From positions 2,828 through 65,862 of the forward strand of contig DF237474.1 of assembly GCA_000708835.1 (NCBI GenBank): DNA of 63,035 bases, read 5' to 3'. The notes below the pieces were generated by a model. It saw nothing but the letters and a program-made list of their open reading frames with translations, made no database searches and had not been told where the DNA came from. This document shows positions 1,000-34,752 of this stretch, one piece after another. Positions within the stretch are counted from its first letter, which is position 1. Each line of letters opens with the position of its first letter. Both the position numbers and the translations under genes were made by a program. The stretch is from Klebsormidium nitens (taxonomy: Eukaryota; Plantae; Klebsormidiophyceae).

Positions 1000-3166
1000 G
1001 AGTTTTCGTAAACCAACGCTCAACTGTTTTCTGACAGAATTATTGTTCAAACTTAGTTTTGCAGACTCTGTGACTACGAAGTTTGCGCGGCCGCGTCTGT
1101 CGTTCCGCCGACCTTCTACGAGCTGCCTACCACCGTTGATCTGCCACGTGTCATGATCAGGTGGGCTTCTCTACTGTGTTCTTAGACCCACAGTGTCATA
1201 GAAGTCAGGAAGTAATTTTTATATTTTTGCACTGGTGCTTCGTGGTCAGCACGGGCAAAGAAGATAATTGGCACTGGCAACTTGAAGTTGCTAGCCACCA
1301 CTCGCACTCCCAAGCGGGACGATCTGAGCCCGATTCCTTTTTGAATGGAAAGTAAGCGGAACCCAGACGAAACCGTCAATTTTCCGACGGTCGAAATCCA
1401 AGTTGACCCACAAAACTTCTCGATGAAGTTGCCCGTCTTTAAATACAAGGAATTAAGGGGTTGAGGATCAACTAGGATGTTGGTCAGTATCTGTGACCTA
1501 GCGGGTTATCAAGCACAGCAGGACGAGCTTCCGGACTTCCAGGGAACTGATCCGTTCGTAAGTCGGGGGGTAAATCCTTCGGGAGACCGACCTGCGTTGG
1601 GTAACCTCCTTCGCAATCGCAGAGCGCTCACTCAGAAGACATTGCGTCACCATCCCGTAACGGATTTCCGGCAACGCCGCGAACAGCCAGGCCCAGATTA
1701 CCGGGTTCGAACCCCGGAGCATTCCATTTTGCTCCCGTGCGCATGTGCGTTCGTCAAGAAGTGCATGCATGGTTGTTGTAACAGAGTCTGTGATCAGCTG
1801 AGCAGCGTTGATTCCAAGTTATAAATTTAAGCTTGATTAGCCTCGACGTAGGACTACGTTTCCTGGGAGTGTGGCTCAAAAGCCACGTCTTCTCGGGACT
1901 CCGTCCTACGCTTTTGCTGATGTTCATAGATCATGGAATATAAGTTTATTTCAAAGAAGACATTACTGAAGGCGGGTTTACGCAGTGCAGGCTGGGTAGC
2001 ACGCTCAGCATTGACACTCTCCGTACCGCCTTTTTACTGACGTTGTCAGGGAATTTTCAATAAAGGTTTAATTTGGAACTCCCAGGCAGAGCTAGTGCAT
2101 CGAGGATATAATGGTATACTACCACATATCCGGGCTTTAAGGCTTTAAGGTTAAGGCCGATGCTCAGCTCTTTTGTCAAGTGACAGCTAACGTGCGGCTT
2201 ATAAGTTTGTTCTAACGAGAGAATTGTAACGAAGGCTTTACCCGTGACGGAGCGGATGAGCGGTACGGTCTGCTCATCACGCTTGCGTCATCGACCCTTC
2301 CTTTTGCAGACATCATAAGTTTGTTATGTCTGACTGTTATGTATTATTTCTATGTGACCAACTAAGTTAAAAATTGGGTTGCACATCCAAATGATACGTC
2401 TGCAGGCTGATGTTGCACAGGTTTGCTGAACGCAGCGTGATTTCATCGGTTGCCAATGCGGCAAAGTTTGATTCTGTGCGGCATCAACTTTTTGCCGTCG
2501 ATAGAACTTTTGGTTCCGCGATGTAAAATCTGCGTCGCTCGATACGCGTCGCGCGGAACCGGAATTTGACCGGCGGTCACTGTCCCCGTACGATCGGACC
2601 CACATAAATTATATCCACTGGTTCTAGTGTTTACAAGGTTAAATTTACCGACTTGTTTCATGGTACAGGGTGACCAGAAGCAAGCCCGGTGCTGAGTGAT
2701 GGGCTAGGCAGATTGCTACAGCCCTCACTCAACGCCGGGCCCCGCCTCTCATTGACTTGTACCTTTTGCAGCTCTCCGGAGTTTCGCTCTTAAGGGGGGA
2801 GGATTGAAACGGCGCTAGCTTTCCAAGCCTCCGCGGGGATCCCCCGGTAGCTAAGCGCGTGCGGGTCACGCGGACTTGTGTCATTAACGCGCAGTTAAAC
2901 CCCGAGCCAGTTCCGCCGTCGGATGGCCGGATCCGGTTGAATTCAAAACGGCATACTGTTTGAGTAAATGCGTGTGCACGTACTGCAAGTCTGCAACTCA
3001 TAATATCATATACATGAGAATATGCATGCAACTCCCAAGGGGGAGCAGGAATGAGACATGTAGTAGTCTCTGGATTCCACCAAAGGTGTAACCTTTACAC
3101 AACCTTCTCTACGAGAAATTTATCACCAGGCGCCTTCGCGCCTCTCCCGGGCTCACCAGGAGTAAG

Positions 3167-3175
3167 TGTTACCTT
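3167..3175 (-). repeat. E2 terminal segment A2 (AAGGTAACA), second copy of 3975-3983
   Basis: Plus-strand tgttacctt occurs at both 3167-3175 and 3975-3983 and supplies the terminal CA. Confidence 0.7.
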
Positions 3176-3972
3176 AGAAATCGCCTTGCTCCAAGACCTG
3201 CTATCTGTGTACGGACTGACAGCCTGAGGGCATGCAAGTCAACGCACGTATGGCAATAAGTACAGATTAGGTCGGAGTCACGTAGGTCAAGATAGCATGC
3301 AGTACAGTAATATGCAATACAGGTCAGCGTAATATATGATGCACTCGAGTCGGTATGGAAACAGAGCACAAAACATACAATAGCACAGGCAATAAAACAA
3401 CAATGGCTGCCGCGGTGGCGGAACAAGCAAAGGCAATGGGAGGGCAAACAAACACTTGGGGTTCCAAGTGGATCCCGTTCTCTTTTGGCGTTGAGAAGGA
3501 ATGACTTTACAAATCAGAATCCTTCTCTTTATTCCTGATTGTCTCTAGCCTATAGGCTGTCAGCGACACGGTCGGCCTCTCCACGCAATGGGAATCGGCA
3601 CGCTGGCAACTGACAGCCTTCACTAAAATATCTAGGCCGCTACTTCAGAATTGGTTTTGAATGCTACGGCCGTCTTCACTTATGCAATGAACTTATTTTT
3701 GTTTTTTCCCTATGCAACTTCCTTGCATCCTCCTCGCTTCCCGAATCTTCTACCCGGCATGCCACGTGTCCTCCTATAATTGGACGGCTATAAGCCGCCA
3801 ACTTCAGCCGCACGTTTGTTCATGTTCACACTTGATTGGGGTGTTGCCACCAATGATTGGTTCCGGTTCGCAGAGGTTTACAGGGTTTGGGATGGGTTGG
3901 TCGCGCGCATGCGCCCGCAGTGCTCTGGGTAGGCTAGTGAGTCTGTGAGGTTAGTAAGGTTTTGAGGTAATA
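3176..3972 (-). repeat. E2 LTR segment B2 (3' copy)
   Basis: Aligns end to end with 13743-14534 (roughly mid-90s % identity by eye, with small indels). Begins TATTAC versus TGTTAC in the 5' copy. Confidence 0.9.
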
Positions 3973-3974
3973 TC

Positions 3975-3983
3975 TGTTACCTT
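3975..3983 (-). repeat. E2 segment A1 (AAGGTAACA), separated from B2 by a 2-nt spacer GA
   Basis: Minus strand reads ...GGGGCA-AAGGTAACA-GA-TATTACCTC. The upstream purine tract is weak. Confidence 0.65.
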
Positions 3984-4363
3984 TGCCCCGGCGGACAAAA
4001 ATGCACGTCCTCGTGCATTAAGGAGGTAGATAGGGTCTTCCGTTCGGTGGTTGTACAGTGATACGGGTAATCAGTGCGACTGGGTCTGGCCGGTAGGTAC
4101 TATAGTATAGTTCGAGTGGGATAATCTGGGTGACGGAGATCATATCTCCGTTGTCAGTTGAGTTGGTTTCTCTGGTGACAATTACCAGATTGTGGGTGTA
4201 GTCAAATCGGTGTAACTCGTGAAGCCAGGTGGGTCGGAAAGGTGGGTATGAGATGCTGGATCGATGGGCTGATTGCGCGGGCAACTTGGCTTGCTTGGAC
4301 AGGGACAATAGTTGTTGGGGGAACAAATATGTTGGCGATCGTGTAGGGTAAGACTAGGTCGCC

Positions 4364-6277
4364 TCATTGGACAGGGCTGAATGGGGAGTTCGGTATGAAG
4401 AACTGGGTTGCGGAAGGAGCAATCGGTACTGCGGTATTTAGAGGAACGGCTTGTTCCATTGGTACGTCCTGGGTCGGGGTTTGTGTAGTTGGTACGGTGG
4501 GTGTCAGAAGGGGCTGAGTTGGAGTGTTCAGACTTGCTGGTGGATCGGTTTGAGTCGGTGGATACGGGTTTGGGTTAAGCGCTGGGTTAGGTGGTAGGTT
4601 AGCTGGTTGAATTGGAAGTGGGTTGACTTGTGGGTTCGATGCGGAGTTAGGTCCTGGTACGGGACGGACGGGCGGAGGAGCCATAGGTAGAGTGGGTCCG
4701 GTGGGTAAGGAAGCAGGTAGGTGAGGTACGGTGAGTTTGGATCGAGGGGTCGGAGAGGTCGGTTGAGGGTTCGAGGTTGAGTTTTTGTTAGGTTTGGTGT
4801 CTCTCACTCCGGGATATTTGGGTGGTGGATTGATGTATTTACCAAAGAGGCGCTCGGCGGTTGCCCAGTAGTTTACGAGTGTGTCTCTAACGGCTTGGTC
4901 AACGCATGAGTTATTTGGGTCGGGTCGGTTGAGCCATCGGTGCAGTGGTGGGATGCCTTCCTCCTGGGCAATCTGATCTAATGTGGCGTTCAGGCTATTG
5001 AGGTTAGTGTTTTGGAAGCAGTGTGTTGCGTAGGCGGGTAGGTATTTTCCTAGGAAAGAGAAAGATTGAGCTGATTCTTGTAGGTGTGGGTCTGAGAGGA
5101 TCTCGTGAAGGAGACTAGTGAGTTTGTTGCGTTTGTCTGTATAATCGGGGTCTTTTGGGTCAAGGTATTTCGGGTTATCTCGGTAAGCGGCGATCGCCCA
5201 GAGCATGATAAACCAGTACTGCGGACGAAGAGCGTCCTCAAAGCGGTACCTGACGGTGTCTGGGTCGCCGGATTTGAGGGTGATTGGGGCGTTGGTCGGG
5301 TCCATGCGTCGGTTAAAGTGGGTCGGTCTGGATCCGCTTGGTCCTGTGGAAGAAGCATGCGAGATATGAAGTTTGGTCTCAGAAGTGCTTGGTAGCTTGC
5401 ATCTGATATTCCGCACTTGTTTCCGTTCTGCGGTAATTTGTATGTCGAGCAAAGTGAGTGGATCAGAAAGGGGCGGTTTTGTAAGTATGCAGAGTTCCCG
5501 GTTAAAGTTTAACACATCAGAATAAGTCTCTGTGAACCATGACGTTCCTGCTTGTTCCAATGGGAGATACTCACGCACGCGGGACAGAAAATTTAGTGGT
5601 TCTGTGTTGATCAGGTCGGCGAACAGGGTTTCCGGAAGTGTGTCGGTAGGATTGCCTTCAAAGTTAAGAGGAGACCACATGCCAGCTCTCCCCAAAGTTT
5701 CAAACCAGTCTGACAGTGATGCATCATTCAAGGGATACGACTGGAGGAAGGCACGGAGTTCAGGCCTCTCAAGAGCTTGATTTAGTTCGGCAAAAAACTC
5801 GGTGTGGAGTGGGTCGCCTGGTTCCTCTGATTTTAACAGGCTCATCGCCTTGATTCCGACTTCAAGAAATGAATACAAATCACGAATGGTGGGTTTTGTC
5901 TCCAAGTCCTGATCCAATGCGTAACTCCAGTATGTCTCGACAATGACAAGCTTGTCATAGAGCTTGACTTGTGGGTTCGAGAATACACGCGCTGCCAAGC
6001 AGAACGACTTGAACAGATTTACGACGACATGGTGTGACTGCGCAACACAAGAAAAATAAACCAGATCGTCTTTTCCGAGACGCAACAGAATTCGAAGCAA
6101 GGCCTTCTCTGGTAAGTTTGTAATGGGCGTAGATTCGTAGCAATCGGTTATGGGTGGCACCAGCGCGTAAGGATCGCCGAACAGCAAGTCCCCGCGGACC
6201 TTCTGCAAAAACGGTTCCGTGTACGGGGTTCGGATCGACGAGGCCATCGAGGTAGGTAATCTCTTTTGTGGATGCAT
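4364..6277 (-). CDS. E2 extra ORF (637 aa) downstream of integrase: F-box-like motif near the N-terminus, Pro-rich C-terminus
   Basis: Uninterrupted 637-codon ORF. ITNLPEKALLRILLRLGKDDLVYFSCVAQSHHVVV fits the F-box pattern LP-x6-I-x3-L-x3-DL-x5-V. Confidence 0.6.
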   Translation of the reverse strand: MHPQKRLPTSMASSIRTPYTEPFLQKVRGDLLFGDPYALVPPITDCYESTPITNLPEKALLRILLRLGKDDLVYFSCVAQSHHVVVNLFKSFCLAARVFSNPQVKLYDKLVIVETYWSYALDQDLETKPTIRDLYSFLEVGIKAMSLLKSEEPGDPLHTEFFAELNQALERPELRAFLQSYPLNDASLSDWFETLGRAGMWSPLNFEGNPTDTLPETLFADLINTEPLNFLSRVREYLPLEQAGTSWFTETYSDVLNFNRELCILTKPPLSDPLTLLDIQITAERKQVRNIRCKLPSTSETKLHISHASSTGPSGSRPTHFNRRMDPTNAPITLKSGDPDTVRYRFEDALRPQYWFIMLWAIAAYRDNPKYLDPKDPDYTDKRNKLTSLLHEILSDPHLQESAQSFSFLGKYLPAYATHCFQNTNLNSLNATLDQIAQEEGIPPLHRWLNRPDPNNSCVDQAVRDTLVNYWATAERLFGKYINPPPKYPGVRDTKPNKNSTSNPQPTSPTPRSKLTVPHLPASLPTGPTLPMAPPPVRPVPGPNSASNPQVNPLPIQPANLPPNPALNPNPYPPTQTDPPASLNTPTQPLLTPTVPTTQTPTQDVPMEQAVPLNTAVPIAPSATQFFIPNSPFSPVQ

Positions 6278-6301
6278 GCGTCAGTGGGGGCCCAGCACGG
6301 T

Positions 6302-7931
6302 TCAATACCTTACCTTTGGGTGCGGCTGGTGTTGTCTGGTCTTCGGTAAGTCGGGGCTGTCTTGCTGGCGGTGCTTTCGGATCAGCGTCCGCAGCGGCAG
6401 AGTCCGGAACAGTGACGTCAGCAGCAGGGTTGGAAGCAGCGTCGGGACGGTGACGGCAGCAGTGCGGTTGGCGGCAGTGTGCAGAACAGTGTTGGCAGCA
6501 ACGGTGTTGTCGGCAGCGTCCGGAGCAGTGACGTCAGCAGCGGCGTTGTTGGCAGCTTCCGGAACAGTGACATCAGCAGCGGCGAGGTTGGTCGGTTTGG
6601 GTGCGGTTGTGTTGCTTGGGTCAAGGATGTCGGTAGGTCCTGGGATTGGAGCAAAGTCGGGCAAGTCAGTCATGTTTTGATCAGCTGTAGTATAGGTCAG
6701 CAAAAGAGGGTCAGTTTCAGGGTTAACGTCGGTAGGTAACAGGTTTAGGTCAAAGCCACGTGGGTTCGGTGCATCGAGTATGGGTTGCGGGGCGTGACTT
6801 TGTGCTGGGAACCTGGAAGAAAGAGACAAGAACTCGGCTGCAAACTGGTCTCGTGAGTAATATTTAACAACTTCGACTCCGCGGCGCTTCCACTTCCGGC
6901 CTTGTGCATCCTGCAAAACAGCAACACGGTTGTCCCCGTGACCAGTCCAACCTTTAAATTTGTACGGCCCTTCCCAGTGCAACTTGAAACCTCGAATGGT
7001 GCCTGGCTTCTGCATCAAGGCAAAATCACCTTTGGTTAAGTTATCAATTCGCTTACGTTTCTATGCGTTCCACCGGGCGTAGTTCTCTTTCGCCTTGGTC
7101 TGAGCTGCTTCGATCTGAACTTTTTACTTGTTGCTGTATGGTTTTGATTGTTCCAAAACGGTGGATTTGATCATCAAGCGTTGGTTCAATTTGTTGGTCT
7201 AGCGGAGTCGGTTGAGCGGCGCCAAACAAGTGATGCGCCGGAATGATCGGTTTTCTGCCATACAGAGCAACGAAGGGGGAGGTCTTGATGCTCTCTGGAT
7301 AGGAGATGTTATACTGAAATATGATTCGCGAGATATGGTCTTCCCAGGTCGTCGGTTCTGCATCACAAAGAGTTCTGAGTTGCGACTTGACAACTGACAT
7401 GAGCCTTTCGACTTGACCGTTTGCCTTTGGATTTCGGGTGCGGATCTGGACATAATTCAAACCCTCCTTCTTAAGTTGTTCGGCAAACTCTTTGTTGAAC
7501 TCGGTCCCACGGTCGGTCACGATTTGAAACGGACAGCCGTGACGGAGCAAGACTTCGTCACGAAATACGTCAGCGACAGTTGCGGCTTTGTTGTCCCTGA
7601 GTCCACGTCCTGACAAGTGTTTGGTGACTGGGTCGATGGCAAGCATGACGTACTTAAGCTTTTGGGTACGAGAACGCTGAACAGGGCCAAGTAGATCAAC
7701 ATGCACGCGAAAGAATGGGTCTACTGGCGGAGTCGGGTAGATCTCACGGTCGGTTCTGCCGGCACGTCCGGCTTTCTCCTTTTGGCAAACATCACACGAA
7801 AGCAAAAACGCCCGGGTGACGACAGCAAGTTGGGGAAAATAGAAGACGCTCTCAACCAGTTGACGAAACTTCCCTTGGTCCTTTGGATAGTGAGCTCCGT
7901 TCTCGTGAATCTCTAGCAAAGCGGGTTGCAC
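6302..7931 (-). pseudogene. pol: E2 integrase (Zn-binding, rve core, GPY/F) plus Ala/Thr-rich repeat linker
   Basis: CDVCQKEK; RVHVDLLGP; IVTDRGTEF; NPKANGQVER; KLHWEGPYKF. Degenerate AAADVTVP repeats at ~6390-6600. Frameshifts present. Confidence 0.9.
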
Positions 7932-8458
7932 TTCGTTCTCCCATAAAACTTCAAAAGCTCAGATCCTTTCTTACGGTAAAGTACGTCATTCGAAAAGGTA
8001 AATTTGGTTTGTCTACGTTTAAAGTTCTGCCGTTGGTTGCATTAGTGACGTCACTTGGGTACTTTTGTTCCTTGAAAAAGTCAACGAGTGAATGCAGGAA
8101 ACGGTATTGGTCGCCTCGGATTGCTTTCAAGGCATCTACTGAGTACTTGTAGGTCTTTTTAGAAGATGAGCTTGGGTTACACGGGGGCTGTGGCAACGCA
8201 AGCTCTAAGTTGGGTGGTTCCTCACCAAGGGCGGCACCAGAAGTGGGTACAAGTTGGTCGTGCTTGCGTTTTCCGGTCGGTCGTGCGGAGTTCTGGACGT
8301 CCTCCGGTTGGGTCGGTTGTGACGTAGGTGTAACTCCAAGGGCGTGGGTCAGGTCCAAGGTAGTCGGGCTGCGGGAAAGAGCAAACATGGTTTGATATCA
8401 AGGCAGAAAAGCATACAAGGCAAAAGGAGAAGTAAGAATCGGTTAACTGGGTTTCAAG

Positions 8459-9898
8459 TTAGTCGCCTTCTTTCATGTCCGATCGGTCTAAATGTTCAGC
8501 AACTGCACGAGAAAGAGCGTCAGCGTTGCGATGTTTGAGTCCTTCCCTGTGACGGAATTCATTATTGAATTCCGCTTCGATCAGATACAACCACCGCGCC
8601 AATTTTCCTGTTTGAGGGGCAAGAGATCGGAGGTAGAGGAGAGCTTTGTGATGTCCGCACAATAAACTTCGGTCGTCCCCTGAGGAAAACAGAAAAATGT
8701 TTCAAGCCGAAGACGAGAGCAGCCAGCTCTCCTTGGGTCGGTGCCAGACGGCGCTCGGTTTTGGAAAGAGTCCGCGACGCATAACCTATGACTCGCTCCC
8801 TTTTATGCCCCGGTTCAATCTGCCCTAGAATCGCAGAGATCGCATGCTTTTCATAGTCGGTATCTATAGAACAAGTTGGCAATCAGGATTGTATGACGTA
8901 AGCACCGGTTCGGAACAGAGGCAATCTTTCAAGAACTCAAAGGAACGCTGACAGGCTTCAGTCCAATCAAAGTCTGCATCCTTTGCTAGCAATTGAGACA
9001 TGGGTCGGGCGATATGCGAAAACTTGGGTATGAAACATCGGTAGTACTGCATCAAACCGAGCACGGACTGCAATTGCTTCACGTTAGTAGGTGGTTTAAG
9101 GTTCCGAATAGCTGTGACGTTCTTCTCGGATGGTTTGATACTGCCCTGTGAGATGACATGCCCAAGGAATTCCACTTCTTCGACTCCAATCACACATTTC
9201 TTGGGACTGAGTTTCATTCCGGCCCAAGCAAGTCGCTCCAAAACTCGGTCAAGTCGGTCAGCCAGGTCTCGAATAGAGTCAGCACCAAGACACAAATCGT
9301 CAATGAAAACTTCAAGCCATTGAAACTCGTGAAGCGGGAAAACAATTTGCTGCAGACGGGTAAATGTTGCGGGGGCGTTTTTCAGTCCCATAGGCATTAC
9401 AAGCCACTCGAACAGACCAATGTTTCGAAGACAAAAAGCTCTGTAAGGTCGGTGCTCCGGTTTGACAGGGACGTTATAAAAACCGCTTGTGACGTCCATT
9501 GTAGCAAAGTACTTGAAGCGGGCAATTTTCTGTTGTAGGTCGGACATAAAAGGCAAGGGCATGGACCAGGGTCGGGTCACGGAATTCAGTTTCCTGAAGT
9601 CGATTAGAAGACGCCACAGTCCTGGTTGCTTGGGTTTGGGTTTCAAAAACGCCGGAGAGCTCCATGGTGATTTACTCGGTTGAATCTGACCTTCTTTGAC
9701 CAACTGCTGTATATACTCTACGGCTGCGCTTTGCTCGGCAAAAGACAGCTTGTATGGTTTGATTTTGAACGGCTTAGTGTCGGTCAGGTCAATTCTCGTG
9801 TTCAATGAGTGTAGTATAACCGATGTCCCCTTTGTGACGGCTGAACCTACTAATGCGTCTCTTGATGACGTCAACAAGTACGTTTCGATCTTGTTCAC
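8459..9898 (-). pseudogene. pol: E2 reverse transcriptase and RNase H
   Basis: WRLLIDFRKLN; FATMDVTSGFYNV; MPMGLKNAPATF; VFIDD; FLGHVI. RNase H: IDTDYEKHAISAILGQ, ELAALVFGLKHF, KHRNADALSR. Confidence 0.95.
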
Positions 9899-10261
9899 TT
9901 AGGGTCTGACCAAAGGTGATTTCCGAAACAATCTTCTCGGCATCCTCTTCAGTATAATCGATATTTTTAAGTGCTTCGACTGAGTACAACTCTTGAGTAG
10001 AATCAAAACACACTTCCATCTCAACACGGCAAAGCTCGGGAGGTGGGTCCGTGCTGTTAGGTGGGTAAATCCAAATCAGCTCCGTAAATTCAGGGTCAGA
10101 GACGGCGCGGCAAACATGCTTTAGAATCTTTTTTAAGCGACCATTCTTAACCCGGTTCGATTTAGCCCAGCGCTGCATACAAGTCAAATCTGTGTTCTTC
10201 CGAATTTTGATACCCTTGATAACCAAACCCGGAGAAGCCTTAGGGCACTCACACGAATCAG

Positions 10262-11194
10262 TCACACAGACTCCTCCAGGGTACACTCGTTTTTTGGATC
10301 CACAGTCAAAGAGAAGTCAGGGGGCGTCTCCCCAATACCAAACCAGCCCCCTTCGATCGCTCCGACTAGGTCGGTTATGCAGTAACTGGGTTTATCGTGC
10401 GGGTCATCACGCTCGTGATCCAAGACAAACGGGACGCGTACGACTGTGTTTCCGTAGTGCAGGTGAAGTTCGTTTTTGGTCCGCAGAATATCTCCCTTCA
10501 AAGGGCCAAGAATGTCGTTTGCAAGCAGAACGTTGTAAGAACACTGTTCAGGCATCACAATCATTGTGGTTCGGATGGTTAGCGGACCGAGGGTTAGCTT
10601 AACCCGGACTTTGCCCTCGGCCGGACACAACTCTCCAGACGAAGTTTTGTAGTGCACTAAAGTCTTCTTGATGCGGTCTAGAATGCCTGCTTCCCTACAA
10701 ATAGCTTTTGAAATGCCAGAAACTTTTGAAATGCCAGAAAACATTGCACCACTGTCCACACAAATACGTCGCTCGGTCAGTCGTTCAATCGTACCCCGAA
10801 TCTTGGTGCGGAGAGGGGTCGGTTGCGTTGGTTCGGTCCGTGGGTCGAGGGAGCACTGGAGCAAGTTGGTCTCCCATGCCCTGGCTGGTTGATTGGGTGG
10901 TGCGTTCGACTGCTGGGTACCTGCGGATTGATAAGTAGGTCGGGTTTGAGTGTTGGTGCCAGAAGAAGCACCAGGTCTGCGAGCTTTTCGTGAGACATGG
11001 TCAAACAGGTGGTCCACGTAACGGTGCACTTCGGTGCGGAAGTGTTTAAAGTCCCGGTGGGTCACGAGTTGGTCCTGGATGGGAGCAAAGATTGCACGAA
11101 TAACAGAACGGTTTTGGTCAGCAAGTGCAGCTCGGTTTCGTTCCCTAGTTTGTCTTTGCTGGGCCTTCTGGTCCTCGGTCAGGGGCTTCTGCAC
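10262..11194 (-). pseudogene. pol: E2 aspartic protease region
   Basis: RRICVDSGAMFSGI active site; YNVLLANDIL C-terminal motif; 18-bp tandem duplication at 10705-10740. Confidence 0.85.
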
Positions 11195-13107
11195 AGGTTT
11201 AAAGGTTCTCTGCGTTTGGGTAAGTCATTTCGAGCTTGTTTCCTAGGACCTTGGTTACTCGGGTGACCTGGACTCTTTCTCTTTTCCGCTGCAAAAGCTT
11301 CTGGGTCATCATCGTCTAACTCGTCCGAGCTAGTGTAAGCATCTTCGTCAACAGACTCGGAATCAGAACCGTCTCGGACTTCGACCTGCAACTCCTCTAA
11401 AAGTTCTGGCATGCCTTCGTCCCGGTCGGTAATAATAACCTCCAAACAGTGGGTTTCCTTAGGTTTGTCAGGACAATCGAATCGGTGAGTACCCCATCTA
11501 CGGCAACAATCCAAGCGGGGAACTTTGGGTGGATTATTGCATTCGCGGAGCAGATGGCCGTGCTCCAGACACTTATGACACTGCATAGCCCTAAGTCGGT
11601 CGTCGATCAGAGGCTGTGGGTTAGCGACGTAACCAGGATTGCCAACTCGTCGTTTGCTTACTTCAGTCCTTAAGGAATCCAGTCCTTCACTGACTGCATG
11701 GATCTGTTGACTCAAATCTTCACCAGGCATTATGCTGTAGATAGTCTCATACTCGCGGGCGGCTGCAATTGCATCATGCACAGTCTGAGGAGCACGCCCA
11801 ATCACAGTGTCCCTGACATTTGGGTGAAGGTTTTTGATAAAGTGGATCTTTTGTTGCTGGGGAACAAGGTCAAGTTCATTGCTGAAAATACCGCATCATT
11901 TTGGTTGAGTATTCACCAACAGATTGCTTCCCCGGCTTATACTGGGTCATTTCAATGTAGATCTGATCATAGTTATTGGTGCCAAATTGCAGACGGAAAG
12001 CACTTTTGAAGTCTTCAAAGGTTTGGTCACCCGGTTGAGTGCCTGCCCAATTCTTTGCATAATCCACACAACACATTTATAGCATAATTGGCCATTTGGT
12101 CTTCCGGAATGTTATGCATCCGTTTGATTCTGTTCATGTCAGCCAGCCAGTCCAAAGCATCAATACCTGTCTTCTTCCCATTGTACTTTGGCATGTGGTG
12201 TAGGGCGGGTAGATTCACGCGTGGCCCAGCCATGGGCGGTGCAACGACTGCGGTCTCTGTGAAAGTGGGTGCTCGAACGCTGACCTGAGGTTCATGTGTG
12301 GTTTGTGAATCTGACACATGTGGTTGAGTCCGGAAAGGCATCGGCCGAGAGCCTGGGTTGATGAACGTGGCTGCCTGACTTGACGGATTGTCTGAGAAAC
12401 ATAAGGGGGTGTGGACATGCGAGAGTTACCAGTAAAGAGAGTAGGTCTGTTTACTTCTGGGTGAGAGGCAGCAGCGAGGGCAGCAGCTACACTGGTAGAT
12501 TGAGCTGGTTCTAAAGGTGCAAAACTCACAGCTGCATGTGGTACATGGCCTGAATACGCCTCATAGGTTGGGGCAACATTGCGTGGATAAGCTGCGAAAG
12601 CTCGCTGAGCATCTACGTATGCAGCTCTCATGATGTCTTGAAGCTGCTCCCGAGAGAGTGTAATGCTTTCACTGTGTGTGGGCTGAGTTGTGGCTGACTG
12701 AGTTGTGATTACGGGCACTGTGTTTGGTGACTGTGGTCGAGAGGCAGGATTTGTTGTGCTCCAGTTCAATGGCAAGGCGGAAGCATCCAAGCAGACAACG
12801 AAGGCAATGCTGGAACAGTCTCATTGCTCCTGGTTGCTCTAAATTGGAAAGCTGGTGCTGAAGTGGCTTGAGAAATGGGGTTTGTGGTTGGCTGAGTGCT
12901 TGTCGTTGGTAGAATGCTTGTCATTGCGATGGATGTCGAAGCAAGTGCTGAGCTAGAACCCCCAAGATTCAATGCAGAAAGCCTGTTAGCTAGCTCAATG
13001 TCAACCGCTAAGGTTTGTGTCATAGGTGGTGGGTCAGACACGGCTGTGGATGTTGTGGTTTGTCCTGAAGGGCCTTCCCCTGAGGGATTGTTATGATCTG
13101 GCCCCAT
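11179..13107 (-). pseudogene. gag: E2 gag (capsid-like region plus CCHC knuckle), several frameshifts
   Basis: MPKYNGKK...DALDWL; TFEDFKSAFRLQFG; CHKCLEHGHLLREC. Confidence 0.85.
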
Positions 13108-13724
13108 TCTTCACACTTTAATCCCAAACACACCTTAAGCTTAGGCTCAGGCACATGGTTTCACAGAAAGATTGAGGGGCAGTCCCGAGGGAGAGGAATG
13201 CATGAAAAGCAGCTAAGCACACCAGACCAGTTCAAATCCACAAAGCTTAAAATCAGTCTCCAAAAAGCAAATGTTCCACTGGAGGTGGCTTGAGCTGTTT
13301 TTAGCTTACCTTACAGGCTGTTCGTGGCCTTGGTCGAATGCTCCGAGCTCTTCTTGCCCTAGCTCCGCGAGCAAGAAGATCCTCAGTCTCAGGGGCACTC
13401 CCTTGGTTTGGGTCTACAGCAAACCTAGATGGTGCAGGATTTTTGGGCTTCTTCCCTGCCAAATATTCTTTCCAGAAAGACATCAAGTTCTAGGATTTGC
13501 CAACAAGGCCCTGGGTCTTGCTAATGCTGGTCAACGCAAGGTCCAGGACATGCTCCCTGGAAAATGGGTCTGGCGTTATAGGTAATTGTTTTCAGGTCAA
13601 TCAATCAATCTACGTTTGCTTCCTCCCTACTTAGGTCGTTTTTAGGTTCAGAGCAAAGCTGGGTTGCCAAGAAACACCTCCAAGACGTGATTGGTCTTGT
13701 GAGGAAGACACAAACAGAAGTGTT

Positions 13725-13742
13725 TCCCCGGCATCGGCGCCA
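13725..13742 (-). promoter_or_regulatory. E2 primer-binding site complementary to the tRNA-Asp 3' end
   Basis: TGGCGCCGATGCCGGGGA directly follows B1. It matches 17/18 to the complement of the land-plant tRNA-Asp(GTC) 3' end as I recall it (TGGCGCCGTTGCCGGGGA, the Athila-type PBS). Confidence 0.85.
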
Positions 13743-14534
13743 AGAAATCGCCTTGCTCCAAGACCTGCTATCTGTGTACGTACGGACTGACAGGGCATGC
13801 AGGTCAACGCACGTATGGCAATAAGTACAGATTAGGTCGGAGTCACGTAGGTCAAGATAGCATGCAGTACAGTAGTATGCAGTACAGGTCAGCGTAATAT
13901 ATGATGCACTCAAGTCGGTATGGAACAGAGCACAAAACATACAATAGCACAGGCAATAAAACAACAATGGCTGCCGCGGCGGCGGCACAAGCACAGGCAA
14001 TGGGAGGGCAACCAAACACTTGGGGTTCCAAGTGGATTCCGTTCTCTTTTGGCGTTGAGAAGGAATGACTTTACAATTCAAAATCCTTCTCTTCATTCCT
14101 AATTGTCTCTAGCCTATAGGCTGTCAGCGACACGGTCGGCCTCTCCACGCAATGGGAATCGGCACGCTGGCAACTGACAGCCTTCACTAAAATATCTAGG
14201 CCGCTACTTTGGAATTGGGTTTGAATGCTACGGCCGTCTTCACTTATGCAATGAACTTATTCTTGTTGTTTCCTATGCAACTTCCTTGCATCCTCCTCGC
14301 TTCCCGAATCTTTTTCCCGGCATGCCACGTGTCCTCCTATGATTGGACGGCTATAAGCCGCCAACTTCAGCCGCACGTTTGTTCATGTTCACACTTGATT
14401 GGGGTGTTGCCACCAATGATTGGCTCCGGTTGCAGAGGTTTACAGGGTTTGGGATGGGTTGGTCGCGCGCATGCGCCCGCAGTGCTCTGGGTAGGCTAGT
14501 GAGTCTGTGAGGTTAGTAAGGTTTTGACGTAACA
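13743..14534 (-). repeat. E2 LTR segment B1 (5' copy); ends ...GATTTCT with no CA before the PBS
   Basis: Direct repeat of 3176-3972; starts TGTTACGTC. Confidence 0.9.
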
Positions 14535-14639
14535 AAGAACGTTTCATCACGTATGACAGGCTGGCTTTTGACAGTCTGGCAACCTTGTATTCGGATATTT
14601 CAAGGATCCTTTAAGATCACTTGATCACCGAACGAGTAT

Positions 14640-15261: not shown

Positions 15262-15420
15262 TGTCGTGCGATATAACGTCGGCGTTTGATTGACGTCGGT
15301 TACATGAAGTGATGAGACACATGGATCGGCTAAGCGTTAAAAAGTACATGATACGAGCAATTGGCGGTATATGTTGAGTAAACAAGGCGGCATGGATGGA
15401 ATTCATAGTCATTCATTATC
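15262..15420 (-). repeat. E3 segment A2 (159 bp, terminal)
   Basis: Copy of 16133-16291 with 2 substitutions seen. Confidence 0.95.
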
Positions 15421-16130
15421 GGGGTCGGGCCCCTTCCCTTGGTTAAGGATTGATTGAAAGGACACGATGGTTTCTTAAGCTGGCGCTCAGAAAAGTATGG
15501 CTGGTATATGGCACGTTATGAACAAGCTGTATTGGAGGTGGCTTGTGCTAACATTCAAGGTAATCCCCACAGCATCCACNNNNNNNNNNNNNNNNNNNNN
15601 NNNNNNNNNNNNNNNNNNNNNNNNNNNNNNNNNNNNNNNNNNNNNNNNAGTGTCCGGTGGCGATGGATAGTTAACTTGAATGAAAGTCAAGTTGGAAATG
15701 GCTGGGCCATTGACTTAAGTACCCGTGGATTCGCATAACGAGTTTGGACATCCACTTGCATGCTGCAGCTGGCTGCGCAGCATGCTATAGGGTACGCGAC
15801 GGCCGGTATCATAACCTGGTGACTCATGGTGACATAACCGGTTAGTGGCTGGTTACGTCCCCAGGGAACGTTCGAAAACGTACCCGGATTCAATCGCGGA
15901 ACCTTGGTTGCAATAATTGGATTGTGGATAACGGGTTGCACCAATGGATGTCCAGTATGATGTGACTGATCCATAGCCAATCCGTGACGAGCCTGCGAGG
16001 TTATGGTTAGATGTGCTAACTGCGGTCGGTTTAAGCTAACTAACTTATCTAAGTATGTTACGACATGCCACGTGTCCCATGCTGGTTCGCCAAGCGACGC
16101 GTTATGGCAGCGACGCGTTGTGGCATGACA
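15421..16130 (-). repeat. E3 segment B2 (contains N-gap 15580-15648)
   Basis: Copy of 45134-46155 on both sides of the gap; about 9 substitutions seen. Confidence 0.9.
15580..15648. other. Assembly gap (N run)
   Basis: 69 N. The matching stretch in B1 is much longer, so the gap size is underestimated. Confidence 0.95.
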
Positions 16131-16132
16131 GC

Positions 16133-16291
16133 TGTCGTGCGATATAACGTCGGCGTTTGATTGACGTCGGTTACATGAAGTGATGAGACACATGGATCGG
16201 CTAAGCGTTAAAAAATACATGATACGAGCAATTGGCGGTATATGTTGAGTAAACAAGGCGGCATGGATGGAATTCATAGTCATTCATCATC
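16133..16291 (-). repeat. E3 segment A1 (159 bp) directly after the PPT; joined to B2 by the spacer GC
   Basis: Minus strand reads PPT-GATGATGAATGAC...CGCACGACA-GC-TGTCATGCC. Confidence 0.95.
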
Positions 16292-16513: not shown

Positions 16514-17155
16514 TCAAATATTGCCGTATCGTTGCATGAAGAAGTAAGTGCAGTCTGCGGTATGAGTACTTTGGCCTACATCGACTTGTCGCTCGATGAA
16601 TTCCAACATTGCGTCTCTGCGCGGCGTACTCATTCGTCTAGTGGTGACGGTTTCCTGTGGGAAATGTGCGGCGCACTCTTCTAATACTTCGTTTATTTCG
16701 GTGTGCGGCCATTTGGCAAGTAAGTACTGGCGCACGTTGATCGGGGTGCGATCAAGATCGTTTTCTCGTTCTAGTACAAGTAGTTCCCTATGCATTTGGT
16801 CAATGAGAGCATACCAGGTGCGATAGCTATGCACTAGTTGTTTAATTCGGTTGCGCCATTTTCCCATTCGCCAGGCGAGTTGGACCTTCTTAGTGGGCCA
16901 CCAATATTCATCCCACTCATGAATGGCTAACTTTTTGAGATGATCATAATATATATTCGGTGTGTAGGAAGGTGGTAAGTCTTCCAGGCCAGGAGTTGGG
17001 GGTGGGCCCCATCCTGAACTCTGAATTTGTTGTGACGGGTTGTCCCCGGGTTGTTGTGCTGAGCTGGATGCCATGCTTCCTGTATGAGTGAAAACATAGG
17101 TTAGACTTTGCCCCTCTTGCTTGGAGCTTATAAAGCGCATCGTGGGCAAAACCAA
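16514..17155 (-). CDS. E3 extra ORF (up to 213 aa) between the PHD finger and the PPT; function unknown
   Basis: Open frame with a complex Trp-rich core (HEWDEYWWPTKKVQLAWRMGKWRNRIKQL). No family recognised. Confidence 0.45.
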   Translation of the reverse strand: MVLPTMRFISSKQEGQSLTYVFTHTGSMASSSAQQPGDNPSQQIQSSGWGPPPTPGLEDLPPSYTPNIYYDHLKKLAIHEWDEYWWPTKKVQLAWRMGKWRNRIKQLVHSYRTWYALIDQMHRELLVLERENDLDRTPINVRQYLLAKWPHTEINEVLEECAAHFPQETVTTRRMSTPRRDAMLEFIERQVDVGQSTHTADCTYFFMQRYGNI

Positions 17156-18686
17156 TCTCCCTTTGGGAGTCTCAGGATAGGTGGGTCCAGGCAGTCCATG
17201 TGGTAGCCCTCGCTACAGTAGTCACAAATAAGCATTTTGGCAGGTCGGTTTGTCTTCTTGCAAATCTGACAAGCCCAGTCCTCATCGTATCCGGAAAGTG
17301 TGGTGTCCATGGTGAGGTCTGTGGCTGGATTGTGACACGGAGCACAATTCTCAACGTGATCTTTAACCGTTTTGCCCTCTCTGCCCTGCAATCCGAGCGC
17401 TCCATTAGGTAGGATCTCCTTAATTCTCAGGATGATGCGGCCTACATTGACATCGAGGGTGTCAACTTTTCTGCAACGCAGGTAGACCAAGTCTCCTACT
17501 TCAAACCTCTTAACTTTAGGGCTCCAATTGCCAGTACGTGTTTTGGCGTACCATAAAGTGTCCCGGTGTTGCGCTGCTTGCAGGTTGCTGAAGGCTATAG
17601 GGATAGCCTTTTTGAACTCCTCTGAACGTGCTGTAATGATTTTCTCCCACACGTCAGGGTTATCCAGGTCGACAGGTGTGTTGACCATTTCTCGGAGGGT
17701 TGCTACTACCACGGGATGTCGGCCAAACATTAGGAAGTAAGGTGAGTAGTCCCCTAATGACGTTTTCTTTGACATGCGGTACCCCATGGCAATCCAAGGG
17801 ATCCACTTATCCCAGGTATCAACTGCATGTGTTAATACGTACTTTCGTACGGCCCGCTTAGTGGTCTGAACTGCGCGTTCAGCGAGGCCCTCGGCTTGAG
17901 GGTGATCGCGTGAAGTTTCACGGTGATTAATGAGAAGTTCTTTACATAAGGTGTCAAATTCTCCTTGGAATTCTTGCCCTTGATCAGTAAGTACTTCCGC
18001 GGGTGCACCAAATGAGTGCAAACTTGAAGGAAAGCCTTTGCAGTTTCCTCAGAGGTATTGTTGGGGAGTGGAACTAGCTCCAACCACTTTGAGAAGTGTT
18101 TTATCATTACCATGATGTAATGATATCTGGATGCTGATGGGGGAAGCGGCCCTGCTAGGTCGCAACTCCATTGGTACCCTAAGCCCATGATTGGAAGGGG
18201 CTTGAGTACTGAGTCCTTGATGTTGAAACTGGTTTTTACGCGGTCACATACATGACAGCTAGCCACTAATTGCGCGATTTGTTCGTGCATTCTTGCCCAC
18301 CAGTGTGTGGGTTCTAACAAGGAGTAAGTTCTTTTTACTCCGAAGTGACCGAGTTGCTTGTGAATATGAGCCACTAATGCTGCCCTGGCGTCAGGCGCCG
18401 GCACTCGTTTTAAGATGCCATCGTTGGTCAGCTTCATGAGAGCATGGTTCTCAAACTTATAGCTCTGTGCTCGTCGCCGTATCCGGTCCCGTTCCTTGGG
18501 GCCTGCATGGCTGGGGTAGACACAATTATTCTGCAGATATTGTATCGTGTTGTGATCAGACCAGATATCGGGGATGGGGGCCAATTCCGGGTCGTCACCT
18601 AGGAGATCACCATCTTTATCTGTCCCTTGGAAGTGTGATTCAATTGCGTCTGTCCCCGTGACGCCGGTAACTGACTCAGTTACCAA
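17128..18686 (-). pseudogene. pol: E3 integrase with C-terminal PHD finger (one frameshift near 18020)
   Basis: HIHKQLGHFG...CHVCDRVK; WSCDLAGP; VLTDQGQEF; HPQAEGLAER; CQICKKTNRPAKMLICDYCSEGYHMDCLDPPILRLPKGDWFCPRC. Confidence 0.95.
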
Positions 18687-18737: not shown

Positions 18738-21013
18738 TTACGCGGAAGATTCGCCAGATGGAATCGCAATTTCCTGATTGACATAAAGATCTTGGGCGGT
18801 ATTCCGATCTTGTGCTTCGTGCGGTTGGTTGGCACGTGTTATGGTTGAGATGTCAGCACTTACCGTAGGGCGAAGTTGCCTTGAAGCGCATGCCCTTTGC
18901 TTCATGACGTGTCCTGTAGTCGGCAGGTCCCCCGTCGACAGTCTCAGCACGGGATAGGAGTCAACTTGGCTTGTTGTTCCCAGGTTCAGGTCTCTGCTCT
19001 TTGAGCTTGCATGCACATGTCGGGATGCATGATGGAAAGGATAGACTTCTCTCTGGATTGGTCGTCCCTGGCTGCTTTCAGTCGACTTAGCAGTCCATTG
19101 TTGACTTACAGTTCTAGCTAGCATTGTAGCTAAGACGCTGGGCGAGTCAACTGAGGGCGGCTTGCTTTCATTAGCAATCCCCTCCTTCTGAATAGTCAGC
19201 AGGCTATTCGAAGCTTCAGTGTCGTTCTGACTTCTAGTGGCATTGGATCGCTCTAAGGTGCGATTTTCACTCAATTCGTTCGGTTGGACATGGTCCATTC
19301 TGGCACCGGTAGAATCTACCTCTGACGGAAGCGGGTTGCGAGACAATCCATCTGCATCTAGGTTCTTAATTCCTGACCTGTGTTTGATGTAGATGTCATA
19401 CTCCTGAAGAATGTTAGCCCATCCGGCGTGCATTCCTCTTAGCTTCTCATTGGTCATTAACCATTCTAACGGTTCATGGTCTGTAATCAGAGTAAACTTG
19501 CGGCCGTACAAGTAATACCTGAAGTGGGAAACAGCCCAAACCGCAGCTAAGCACTCACCGTGGTAGCTGGAGTAATTGCGTTCCGTCTTGTTACAACTGC
19601 GACTGGCATAGGCAACGACATACTCGTTGCCCTCATCATCTCGTTGGGTGAGCACTGCGCCAAGCCCTTGTGCACTCCAGTCGGTGTGCAGCTCGAATTC
19701 GCGCTTGAAGTCGGGCCGGCGAAGGATGGGTGCTTCTGTTAAATGCGTCTTCAGCGTATCAAACGCCCGTTGGCATTCAGTCGTCCAGTCATATGATACT
19801 CCTTCCTGCAGCAAGTGGTTTAGTGGGTTTGCTATCTTGCTGTAGTTCTTGACGAACTTCCGATAATATCCGGCAGTTCCTAGGAAGGCTCTTAGTGCGC
19901 TTACATCTGGAGGAGGTGGGATTCTTAAGATTGCTTCCACCTTCTTTTCCTGCACTGCGGTTCCTTTAGGGACAATCAGGTGTCCCAGGTATCCTACGTC
20001 GGGTACGGCGGCGCGCATCTTTTTAGGATGGCATTTGACCCCTCTGTCTCTGAGTTGTTGAAAGACTTGTTTCAGGTGGGCCAGGTGTTCTTCGAAAGTT
20101 CTGCTGAACACTATTAAATCATCAATATAGCGGCGGCAAAAAGCTCTTTCGGCGCGGAGGGTTTAGTCCATGACCTTTTGAAAGAAGGCTAGTGCGTTCT
20201 TCAGTCCAAATGGCATGACCAACCATTCGTACAACCCGTCTGCTCCCCAGAATGCGGTCTTGCAGCGATCTTCTTCTGCAATCCGTATCTGATTGTAACC
20301 TTGACGAAAATCCAAGGTAGTGAACACTTTTGCATCGCCTATGACGTCGAATATTTCCTCTGGTGTTGGTATCTGATAGTGGTCAGGGACACTTACCCGG
20401 GTGAGGCCACGGTAGTCTCCGCAAGCTCTTCGTTGCGTCCAGTCTCCGTTTTCGTCCTTCTTTGGTGGCATAGTAATGGGGGAGGCCCATTGTGAGGTTG
20501 ACGGTCTAAAGAGGCCATTCTTAAGTCGTTCTGCCACTTGTTGCGCTAGGTCTTCCTTTTCTGACTGCGCTAACCGGTACTAGTGTTTGAATATTGGTGT
20601 CTCGTCACTGACTGGAATTTCGAATTCCACTCCAGGAATAGTAGTCATCTCTTGCATGTTGAAGGCGAAGATGTCTTTAAAACTGTCCAGGAGCTCTGTT
20701 AATTGTGCTTGTTGTATTTCAGTCAGTGAGTCTCCTATAGGCCAGCTCCATTCCTCTTCTGTTGTTTTTGCAGGGTTTACAACTAAACCTTTGTCTTCTG
20801 CAGGTCCTACTGTTGGACTTGCCTGCTTGGCAGCTTCCTTTGGCTGCTGGCCGGGACTCTTTGAATTTCCGGCTGATCTGCCGTCTCTCGGCTGATCCTT
20901 AGAACCACCAACGTGATTTATGTGCTCGCCGGGCGAGCGCTCGCTGCCCTTTCCTGCGCGTCTCAGTTGAAGTTTGGCTTCTTGTCTGCTGAGGGGATGG
21001 TCAGGGCTGTCTT
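18738..21013 (-). pseudogene. pol: E3 reverse transcriptase and RNase H
   Basis: RRACGDYRGL; FTTLDFRQGYNQI; MPFGLKNA; RRYIDDLIVF near 20110-20140; FELHTDWSAQGLGAVL; KNLDADGLSRNP. Confidence 0.95.
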
Positions 21014-21672
21014 TGCCATGCCGTGGGGCGTCCGTGCCGTACCACGTAGCGCGCGCGCCCGCGGCTGGCGGCATAGAGGGTGGCAACCGGCGGGAGTCAT
21101 CCACGCGGCTGCCTCAAGGGTTTCGAGGCTCCGGTGGCCTGTCAAGTGTGCACCGGGATGACCACATGGATCCGGTTCAGTGGCTCCGGTGTGACCACAC
21201 AAATCCGGTCAAGTGACCAATAGCTGTACGAGGTCACACGAGTGTAGCAGATGCTAGAGTTGCTAGTTGTTGACCTCCGGCCGAGTGTAGATCTGGAGCT
21301 GTAGGCTGATCTCCGGCCAAGAGGTAGTAGTAGTATATCTACTTGCTTCTAGAGTAGTGTGACTCACTTCTCAAGTTGCAAGTTCTCCGTGAGTATCCTT
21401 GTGAGGACAATGGCGCCTAAGCATGAGAGAAGGACCTGTTGACAGCGAGCAGCGATCTCCGGTGCGGAGCACGACTCCGGTGATGTGAGTGTTGAGCTGT
21501 GTGCAATGGAGGCTTTCTTGTCATGCGAGTCATTGGGAGGCCGGAGCAATGTATGAGGAGTCAAGGCATAGCATGGGGTATGTATGTCAATGTATGGTTG
21601 TATGGTCTGTATATCGGTGACTATCCCTTTGAGCAAGCACCCAAGTGTAAAGCCGAGAAGTGGCATTTACTT
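21014..21672 (+). repeat. E4 segment B1 (5' partial LTR)
   Basis: Copy of 34753-35408 with about 10 differences. TATA-like gtatatct near 21343. Confidence 0.95.
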
Positions 21673-21687
21673 GCAACTTGAGAAGTG
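21669..21687 (+). promoter_or_regulatory. E4 putative self-priming PBS
   Basis: ACTTGCAACTTGAGAAGTG is the exact reverse complement of 21365-21383 inside B1. No TGG-type tRNA match abuts the repeat. Confidence 0.75.
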
Positions 21688-22201
21688 CTTGCTTGGTGGT
21701 CACTAGAGGCCTAGTGGTCTTGTCAAAACTGAGGGGGGGTAGCTAAGATTGCACTTTGCCCTGCAGTGACAGGATTGTTTCCAGTTGCGTGTGTTGCGTT
21801 TCGGGAGCGGTGATCAGCCAAGGGGCTGGACCGGTGGCATAAGCAGGGACCTGTGGTTTCTCTAGCACCGGTTAGCAACTTAGAAAGGGGGCCTGAGCTT
21901 GGGTCCTCTTTGTTGCTGTTCCCGAGCTTGGTATAGCTTGGAAGAGACCTCTTTGAGCTTGGGGTATCCTGGAAATAGGTACCGGAGCTTCGTAAGTGCT
22001 TGTCTTAGGGCCCGCGAAGGGTGCCGGAGGACTGTTAGTGCTTGTCTTAGGGCCCAGGAAGGGTACCGGAGGACAGTAGGTCTTGTCTTAGGGCCCGCTA
22101 AGGGTGCCGGAGGACAGGTCTGAGCACCGGAGTGTGCTTGGGTCAAAGGGGCTAGCTATAAGATTGTAGCTTGTAACTCCCAGTCACGCTGGTCTCTGCG
22201 T

Positions 22202-27000: not shown

Positions 27001-27997
27001 GGCTGCGGTGATGGTAGATGACCCCGGAGAGGTGACCCGCCGCACCGCCCAGCGGCTACACGACTACCGCAAGGAGCGAGGCCTTGCCGCAGCCGCGCAC
27101 ACAGAGGCGCAGGAGCTGGAAGCGGCAGAGGAGGCCAAGAAGGCGGGCAAGGTAAAAGCCAAGGTGGGGGAGGAAGTGCCTCCCACCCCGGAGAAGCCAC
27201 CGGGCCCCGGGGCCGCAGACGGAGTTCCTGCAGCACAAGGGGCGCAACCGGAGGGAGGCGTAGCGGAGGAGTTACCCGCAGCGCCTGAGAAGGATCAGGG
27301 CGAGGGAGCTGCCGGAGGGGCGGGACGAGTGGTACCGGAGGCCGTGATAGCGGCCCCTGTCTCTTCCCGGCCACCTGTACCCGCAGCCCCCGCCAGTGCG
27401 ACCCCGGTCACACTCGCCTTGGCCATGGCCGGACGTGCGGGCTTGGCAGCACCGGTGGCCAAACGACCCCCGGTGCCAACAGACGTGGTGGTACGGGTGG
27501 GAGATGTGTCTATTTCATGGGACGAATCGATTGGGCAGGCCGTCAACCGGGCCAGCAATGCCATCGTGCGAAACATCCTCCCGCACTACCTCCGGGGCCC
27601 CAATCTGACGGCCTTTGTGGCAGCGCACCTGTACGAGGAGCTGCGCCGCAGACCCCCGGGGGTACCTACCCCACCTCCAGTCCCGCCAGCTAAAGGCGAG
27701 GAGCAGGAACGACAGAGCCCGGGTCCCACGGACGAGCACCCACAGCGGGAGCAGCCCCGGAGGGACCACCCTGAGGGCGACGGAGGCGGAACCGGAGGAC
27801 AACCGGCACCGGCCCCCGCGGCAGCACCTGGGGCAGGGGGACATCAGGCCCAGGGCCCCAAGGCGGGGACCCAGGGCGGGCAGAACGCGGGGGGAGCGGC
27901 TCCGGGCGGAGCCGGCGAGCGTGCAGCGAGGGAGCCAGCCATTTCCCGGGCGCCAGCGCGGCCAACACGCCTCCGGCGATGCATTACGCCGGAGTAG
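24094..27997 (+). CDS. E4 long low-complexity gag-pol linker ORFs (836 aa and 494 aa), function unknown
   Basis: Two long overlapping frames, rich in Glu/Pro/Ala, with some globular-looking blocks (e.g. EELEAYILWHGRWLVTYEQH). Confidence 0.55.
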
Positions 27998-28051
27998 TCA
28001 GCTCCCCGAGCGCTAGTATGGCCAATTCAACCCCCGGCGTCCCCTACCTAC

Positions 28052-33800: not shown

Positions 33801-33850
33801 GGACGGAAGCCGACCGCCGGACGTGGGACGAGTGGCTGCCGTACCTGGCA

Positions 33851-34528: not shown

Positions 34529-34558
34529 CTCGCCACAGCCGCGGGGGCCGCGGCAGGC

Positions 34559-34570
34559 GAGTGGGGGGGA
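34559..34570 (+). promoter_or_regulatory. E4 polypurine tract
   Basis: GAGTGGGGGGGA directly before A1. Confidence 0.85.
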
Positions 34571-34750: not shown

Positions 34751-34752
34751 GC

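Follow-up and report, generated by a model that had tools for sequence, protein, structure and literature searches.

The LTR retrotransposon E2 of Klebsormidium nitens is probably a genuine permuted-LTR gypsy element, in which the rotated segment of the repeat is reduced to a minimal 9 nt and which belongs to a lineage distinct from that of its neighbours E3 and E4. All three elements reside in the window, that is, the entire 63-kb stretch of contig DF237474.1 (63,035 nt) analysed here, which consists of nested LTR retrotransposons. These three elements are delimited by long direct repeats: the repeats of E2 are located near 3.2–4.0 kb and 13.7–14.5 kb, those of E3 at 15.3–16.3 kb and 45.1–46.2 kb (minus strand) and those of E4 at 21.0–21.7 kb and 34.6–35.6 kb (plus strand), while no long repeats were found elsewhere in the window. 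The layout B...A-NN-B-A, composed of a repeat B, a second segment A and a 2-nt spacer, is common to all three LTR-bearing elements.

Repeat layout of E2

E2 is read on the minus strand and comprises the following features (window coordinates):

3167–14534, minus strand: E2, a decayed LTR retrotransposon of the Ty3/gypsy type, about 11.4 kb long and delimited by the TG of B1 and the CA of A2; the repeat pair is spaced about 10.56 kb apart
13743–14534, minus strand: B1, the 5′ repeat, 792 nt, starting with TGTTAC and ending with GGCGATTTCT (...GATTTCT), with no terminal CA
13726–13742, minus strand: primer-binding site (PBS) TGGCGCCGATGCCGGGG, tRNA-Asp/Asn-type, adjoining B1 with zero gap
3984–3992, minus strand: ..CCGGGGCA, presumed plus-strand primer site, weak, immediately upstream of A1 and read from the sequence
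3975–3983, minus strand: A1, AAGGTAACA, 9 nt, the presumed first 9 nt of the reverse-transcribed LTR
3973–3974, minus strand: spacer GA, 2 nt, the centre of an internal att-like palindrome, flanked by CA (A1) and T(G>A) (B2)
3176–3972, minus strand: B2, the 3′ repeat, 797 nt, starting with TATTAC and ending with ...GATTTCT
3167–3175, minus strand: A2, AAGGTAACA, adjoining B2 with zero gap; integrated E2 terminates at its 3′ end with the CA of this segment
3164–3166, minus strand: 3′ flank CTT, the sole candidate target-site duplication of E2, matched by CTT at 14535–14537

An earlier note, made from the sequence, had proposed that B1 ends with ...GATTTCT directly at a tRNA-Asp-type PBS without a CA, and that the 3′ repeat is bracketed by 9-nt copies in the order A1-GA-B2-A2. 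Both features are present, the former at 13743/13742 and the latter at 3983–3167, in unchanged position. Read along the minus strand, the 3′ end of E2 thus consists of AAGGTAACA, GA, B2 and once more AAGGTAACA, followed by the flank CTTACT. As compared to a canonical LTR, B1 lacks the final 9 nt including the CA, and this 9-mer recurs 2 nt before B2. A1 and A2 are identical at 9 of 9 positions and their neighbouring bases are unlike, which sets the length of the repeat at exactly 9 nt. In the 63-kb window, AAGGTAACA occurs only twice on either strand, both times at E2 (about 0.5 occurrences are expected window-wide). The probability that the 9 nt following B2 recur by chance 0–4 nt upstream of B2 is approximately 5 × 4^-9 = 2e-5. 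B1 and B2 align with 96.5% identity and differ by 28 mismatches as well as four gaps of 1, 1, 1 and 2 nt; at 3.5% LTR divergence, the copy is old.

Together with the spacer, the last bases of A and the first bases of B form the palindrome GTAACA-GA-T(G/A)TTAC, which has CA-N2-TG geometry. When reverse-complemented, the 9-nt A agrees with the first 9 nt of B at 7 of 9 positions for either copy, and at 8 of 9 only when compared to the inferred ancestral start. Judged from its sequence, A of E2 is essentially the bare terminal inverted repeat that the integrase would bind. The integrated ends are TG at 14534 and CA at 3167. At the internal att copy (3971–3972, minus strand) the sequence reads TA, as opposed to TG in the terminal copy at 14534; progeny of this E2 copy would inherit the defective integrase site. 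The caveats raised in the note, namely a weak polypurine tract and a flank match of merely 3 bp, are both real: A1 is preceded by a poor tract, and of the flanks only CTT matches, which is expected by chance in about 1 of 64 cases, with mismatches in the 4- and 5-bp registers. Searching the window by blastn with the LTR as well as with the whole element yielded no further copies or fragments of E2, whose layout is known from one decayed copy. A spurious 167-aa ORF spans the B1/PBS junction, and a 9-nt insert at this position would add KVT in frame.

E3 and E4 share the repeat grammar of E2

E4 (21014–35588) is inserted within the reverse-transcriptase region of E3 (15262–46155) and is flanked by a clean 4-bp duplication, TCTT. 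The repeats of both elements are composed as follows:

34571–35588, plus strand: 3′ end of E4, with A1 at 34571–34750 (ending with GGCA), GC, B2 at 34753–35408 and A2 at 35409–35588
21014–21672, plus strand: 5′ B1 of E4, starting with TGCC and adjoined by a self-complementary PBS
21673–21687, plus strand: PBS of E4, 15 nt, the exact complement of 21365–21379 within B, Tf1-like self-priming
21010–21013 and 35589–35592: target-site duplication TCTT of E4, 4 bp
15262–16291, minus strand: 3′ end of E3, with A1 at 16291–16133 (ending with GACA), GC, B2 at 16130–15421 and A2 at 15420–15262
46155–45134, minus strand: 5′ B1 of E3, starting with TGTC, with a self-complementary PBS next to it
Target-site duplication of E3: CCGG, 4 bp

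The segment A measures 159 nt in E3 and 180 nt in E4 as compared to 9 nt in E2. In E3 and E4, priming delimits an LTR that begins with the first base of A and ends with the last one of B, whereas the integrated form runs from the TG of B to the CA of A. At their B2/A2 junctions the end of U5 is joined to the start of U3 with zero extra bases. The internal site reads ..GGCA-GC-TGCC.. in E4 and ..GACA-GC-TGTC.. in E3, and A1 is preceded by G runs of 6–7 in both elements (seven G in E4). E2 has the identical grammar: in all three elements B1 adjoins the PBS, B2 adjoins A2 without an added base, the ends are TG...CA and A1 follows a G run. By its repeat order B...A-NN-B-A, its internal CA-N2-TG site and the PBS adjoining B1, E2 fits the permuted-LTR gypsy type of K. 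nitens. Thus, the suggestion that one layout spans A lengths of 9, 159 and 180 nt is borne out within this copy of E2.

Regarding the neighbours themselves, the rve-type integrases of E3 (17128–18021, minus strand) and E4 (33851–34528, plus strand) end in a PHD finger, not a chromodomain (Pfam PHD matches of 1.3e-12 and 1.4e-10, respectively). An assembly gap, represented by a run of N at 15581–15648, interrupts B2 of E3.

Alternative explanations for the end repeats of E2

The main competing explanation regards E2 as a canonical element with an LTR composed of B + A (TGTTAC...AAGGTAACA), whose 5′ LTR later lost its last 9 bp, while the 9-mer upstream of B2 is there by chance or forms a functional part of the polypurine region. 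Several observations are in accordance with this scenario. B2 + A2 has textbook TG(TA)...CA ends with an inverted repeat of 7/9 in each copy, and the 3′ repeat taken alone (TATTAC...GTAACA) has the appearance of an ordinary LTR with inverted TG...CA ends. The purine-rich run GGGGCAAAGGTAACAGA adjoins B2, and the tract before A1 being poor, the purine-rich GGGGCAAAGG..AGA is more convincing as a primer site adjoining B2, as would suit a canonical LTR. Moreover, the E2 copy is old, as judged from its LTR divergence, its ORFs are broken and Athila-type elements, which carry the kind of PBS found in E2, are canonical. A permuted layout is further called into question by its derivation from a single decayed copy, by the 3-bp flank match as compared to the clean 4-bp duplications of E3 and E4, and by the TA in place of TG at the internal att copy. 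However, the canonical scenario requires two independent coincidences, i.e. a 9-nt deletion that removed exactly A in the absence of microhomology and an exact 9-mer located 2 nt before the 3′ LTR, the latter with the chance frequency of ~2e-5 given above. A clean loss of 9 nt at the very last bases of B1 would be an outlier, as the remaining indels between B1 and B2 comprise just 1–2 nt. Together with the low probability of the 9-mer, this renders a chance match plus a private 9-bp deletion very unlikely. The match to the grammar of E3 and E4, including the 2-nt spacer, would also be left unexplained. All in all, we regard a canonical origin of the E2 ends as unlikely, though it is the strongest of the competitors.

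Still less probable is an artefact of assembly or copy history, that is, a misjoin at the repeat end in this short-read draft, or recombination between E2 copies with different ends. Runs of N do occur within repeats of the window, e.g. at 15581–15648, and the absence of a proper target-site duplication would fit recombination between elements. Yet there are zero Ns near either junction of E2, and neither a misjoin nor recombination would leave the 3′ repeat bracketed by two exact copies of a 9-mer and at the same time delete it at the 5′ repeat. Finally, 9-bp direct repeats around a segment resemble a target-site duplication, and A2 might accordingly represent host flank, the repeat consisting of B alone and AAGGTAACA having been duplicated upon a separate insertion of GA-B2; we consider this highly improbable and reject a 9-bp target duplication for E2, since the partner of B2 stands 10.5 kb away beside the PBS, integrases of this kind generate duplications of 4–6 bp, B by itself would have no CA end, and the same bracket measures 159 and 180 nt in E3 and E4, respectively, which is far beyond the length of a duplication.

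Coding capacity of E2

E2 carries the following ORFs in addition to its repeats:

8864–9898, minus strand: reverse transcriptase (Pfam RVT_1, 4.8e-27)
8562–8882, minus strand: RNase H, continuing the reverse transcriptase (Pfam RT_RNaseH, 7e-16)
7053–7931, minus strand: DDE integrase (matches among solved structures to PFV integrase, 3.7e-12, and Ty3 Gag-Pol, 3e-9; weak Integrase_H2C2)
4364–6277, minus strand: extra 3′ ORF of 637 aa downstream of the integrase, with the relatives P0001, P0003 and P0002

The domain order, reverse transcriptase–RNase H–integrase, is that of Ty3/gypsy (Metaviridae-type) elements and, as judged from these matches, E2 encodes a retroviral-type DDE integrase. When 13 ORFs of E2 were compared to Pfam, no match to a tyrosine recombinase (Phage_integrase) and none to a Dnmt3-type or other DNA methylase was obtained. 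A PHD finger was likewise not found in E2, and its gag-region ORFs had no Pfam match. Classification of E2 as a DIRS-type element was rejected, a DDE integrase being present and a tyrosine recombinase not. Many reading frames of E2 are broken, indicating that this copy is dead.

The 637-aa product of the extra ORF shares 67% identity with P0001, 69% with P0003 (partial) and 40% with P0002. P0001 and P0003 extend for approximately 114 residues beyond it, showing that the E2 version is shortened. The missing tail probably corresponds to the ORF at 4326–4018, which ends 35 nt before A1. For the region 4018–6277, Pfam yields solely a weak, sub-threshold F-box match.

E2 belongs to a distant, tRNA-primed lineage

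E2 had been suspected to represent a separate gypsy lineage that differs from E3 and E4 in priming mode, cargo and integrase tail, and our data agree with the view of a separate lineage. In the reverse transcriptase, E2 is 30–40% identical to E3 and E4, which share 41–47% with each other. The corresponding values are 36% as compared to 66% for RNase H, and 23–29% as compared to 44–61% for the integrase. The PBS of E2 is tRNA-Asp/Asn-type, whereas those of E3 and E4 are self-complementary, and E2 has an extra 3′ ORF; neither a DNMT nor a PHD finger was found in it. A search of the full library with the E2 reverse transcriptase retrieved 13,486 cluster representatives at E ≤ 1e-30, the 150th of which still scored 230 bits. 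In pairwise BLASTP, whose scale differs from that of the library search, the E4 reverse transcriptase scored 110 bits against that of E2; provided that the two scores can be compared at least roughly, a very large number of families would be nearer to E2 than E4 is.

The PBS TGGCGCCGATGCCGGGG is the sole match of its kind in the window. Its part TGGCGCCGATGCC agrees at 12 of 13 positions with the published ATHILA 13-mer TGGCGCCGTTGCC; there are no tRNA genes in the window, and the PBS of E2 is therefore matched to published plant sequences only. TGGCGCCGTTGCC has been described as the tRNA-Asn/Asp PBS 13-mer of ATHILA elements (preprint 10.64898/2026.03.20.713144), and tRNA-Asp primes Diaspora and Calypso as well. 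Taken together, the sequence comparisons support the assignment of E2 to a different, tRNA-primed lineage that is distant from E3 and E4. Its PBS, extra 3′ ORF and large size are Athila-like, which provides a lead, but only a lead, to membership in the Athila lineage.

Searches for relatives in other sequence collections added little to this picture. Alignment of the extra 3′ ORF with metagenome contigs and viral contigs detected no relative, and the same was true for the E2 reverse transcriptase in viral contigs. A DNA pattern representing the LTR-PBS junction (gap of 0–15 nt) had 15 matches in metagenome contigs, all of them chance hits in GC-rich bacterial contigs that are otherwise unlike E2. 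In a collection of bacterial and archaeal genomes, the E2 reverse transcriptase aligned with three contaminant contigs at 28–38% identity, which are outside of the E2 family. Among the sequences encountered are gypsy-type reverse transcriptase fragments with 38% identity to E2 on two short contigs filed under bacterial genomes (L016, 1410–1883; L017, 2071–2505); the source records are a Streptomyces entry flagged UNVERIFIED_CONTAM and a Labilibaculum MAG. Most likely, these fragments represent eukaryotic contamination.

A model for insertion of E2 via joined cDNA ends

As part of the permuted-LTR reading, and with the same confidence, we consider the end repeats of E2 to be circularly permuted relative to the LTR generated by reverse transcription. 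Priming would set the LTR of E2 from the first base of A, following the plus-strand primer site, to the last base of B, preceding the PBS, that is A-GA-B. A linear cDNA would carry A-GA-B at both ends, and the resulting termini, AAGG... and ...TTTCT, would not be substrates for integrase. The integrated element, by comparison, starts at the TG of B and stops at the CA of A, resulting in B...A-GA-B-A. At the B2/A2 junction, the end of U5 meets the start of U3 with no base gained or lost, which would require prior joining of the cDNA ends. Joining may occur by ligation, giving rise to a 2-LTR circle, or else reverse transcriptase may switch templates end to end. Integrase would then cut after each CA of the CA-N2-TG palindrome in one of the LTR copies, yielding a linear molecule B-PBS-...-A-GA-B-A with recessed CA-3′OH ends and 2-nt 5′ overhangs. 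Such ends would constitute a normal strand-transfer substrate, and the molecule could subsequently be inserted. The spacer of the LTR copy that is cut would be lost, as seen in E2. Cutting of the other copy, or of both, would generate products without a 3′ R that are unable to replicate, so that only the observed layout would propagate. The same layout may be expected throughout the E2 family.

According to the textbook view of retrotransposition, joined LTR ends such as those in 2-LTR circles are dead ends, and DDE integrases act on the ends produced by reverse transcription. The K. nitens elements depart from this rule. Our analysis suggests insertion via joined ends also for a second lineage, whose integrase is of the ordinary kind. 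It is an evenly balanced question whether joined-end insertion via an internal att palindrome extends beyond the methyltransferase-bearing, self-primed clade to a distant, tRNA-primed, Athila-like gypsy lineage, in which the rotated piece has been cut down to a 9-nt integrase-binding end. If a second, unrelated lineage indeed uses a 9-nt version, the minimal sequence that has to be carried across the junction would approximate the terminal inverted repeat, and the joined-end route would be general rather than the oddity of one family. In that case, it would be of ancient origin in gypsy elements of streptophyte algae, or else imposed by the host. In addition, a cryptic permutation could be present in elements elsewhere that look nearly canonical. 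Once B1 and B2 have recombined, a solo B-A stays behind which resembles a normal LTR, and LTR finders that require equal LTRs would misplace the ends by the length of A + 2 nt.

Comparison with known systems

That gypsy elements of K. nitens can have a permuted layout has been noted before, in the legend to Figure 4c of de Mendoza et al. 2018 (PMC5890265), which concerns KnitGypsy-Dnmt3. E3 and E4 appear to be of this kind. KnitGypsy-Dnmt3 shares with E2 the gypsy domains, a DDE integrase, DIRS-like repeats (one, followed by the coding region and three more), an internal CA-N2-TG site and a PBS adjoining the 5′ repeat. In contrast, E2 has an A of 9 nt instead of 159–180 nt, a tRNA-type instead of a self-complementary PBS and the spacer GA instead of GC. 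It also differs by its extra 3′ ORF, by the lack of a detectable methyltransferase or PHD finger and by a reverse transcriptase that is 30–40% identical to those of E3 and E4. A text search of the literature for split direct repeats in conjunction with gypsy and integrase found no treatment of the mechanism; the layout was met in the figure legend only.

The Athila lineage of plant Ty3/gypsy elements (Athila, Calypso, Diaspora) resembles E2 in its tRNA-Asp/Asn-type PBS, its length and the extra ORF following the integrase. However, Athila-type LTRs are canonical, ending with CA and separated from the PBS by 3–6 nt, whereas in E2 GATTTCT adjoins TGG without CA and without spacer. The split direct repeats of the DIRS order, as present in Ngaro and PAT, formally share the repeat order of E2, and their internal junction copies the joined ends. 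Ngaro and PAT nevertheless employ a tyrosine recombinase and produce no target duplication, whereas E2, E3 and E4 have DDE integrases and TG...CA ends, and E3 and E4 are flanked by 4-bp duplications. A further parallel is provided by retroviral integrases such as those of HIV-1 and foamy virus, which cleave the palindromic LTR-LTR junction of 2-LTR circles, thereby exposing usable ends. There, cleavage represents a side route acting at the junction of two full LTRs, while in E2, E3 and E4 the palindrome is located inside each reverse-transcribed LTR and the route would be obligatory.

Sequences flanking the 3′ end of E2

Eight bases past the 3′ end of E2, at 3141–3158 on the minus strand, the sequence TGGTGAGCCCGGGAGAGG resembles a tRNA-type PBS, and it is followed by the perfect hairpin AGGCGC-CTTC-GCGCCT. 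The site may belong to an older element into which E2 landed.
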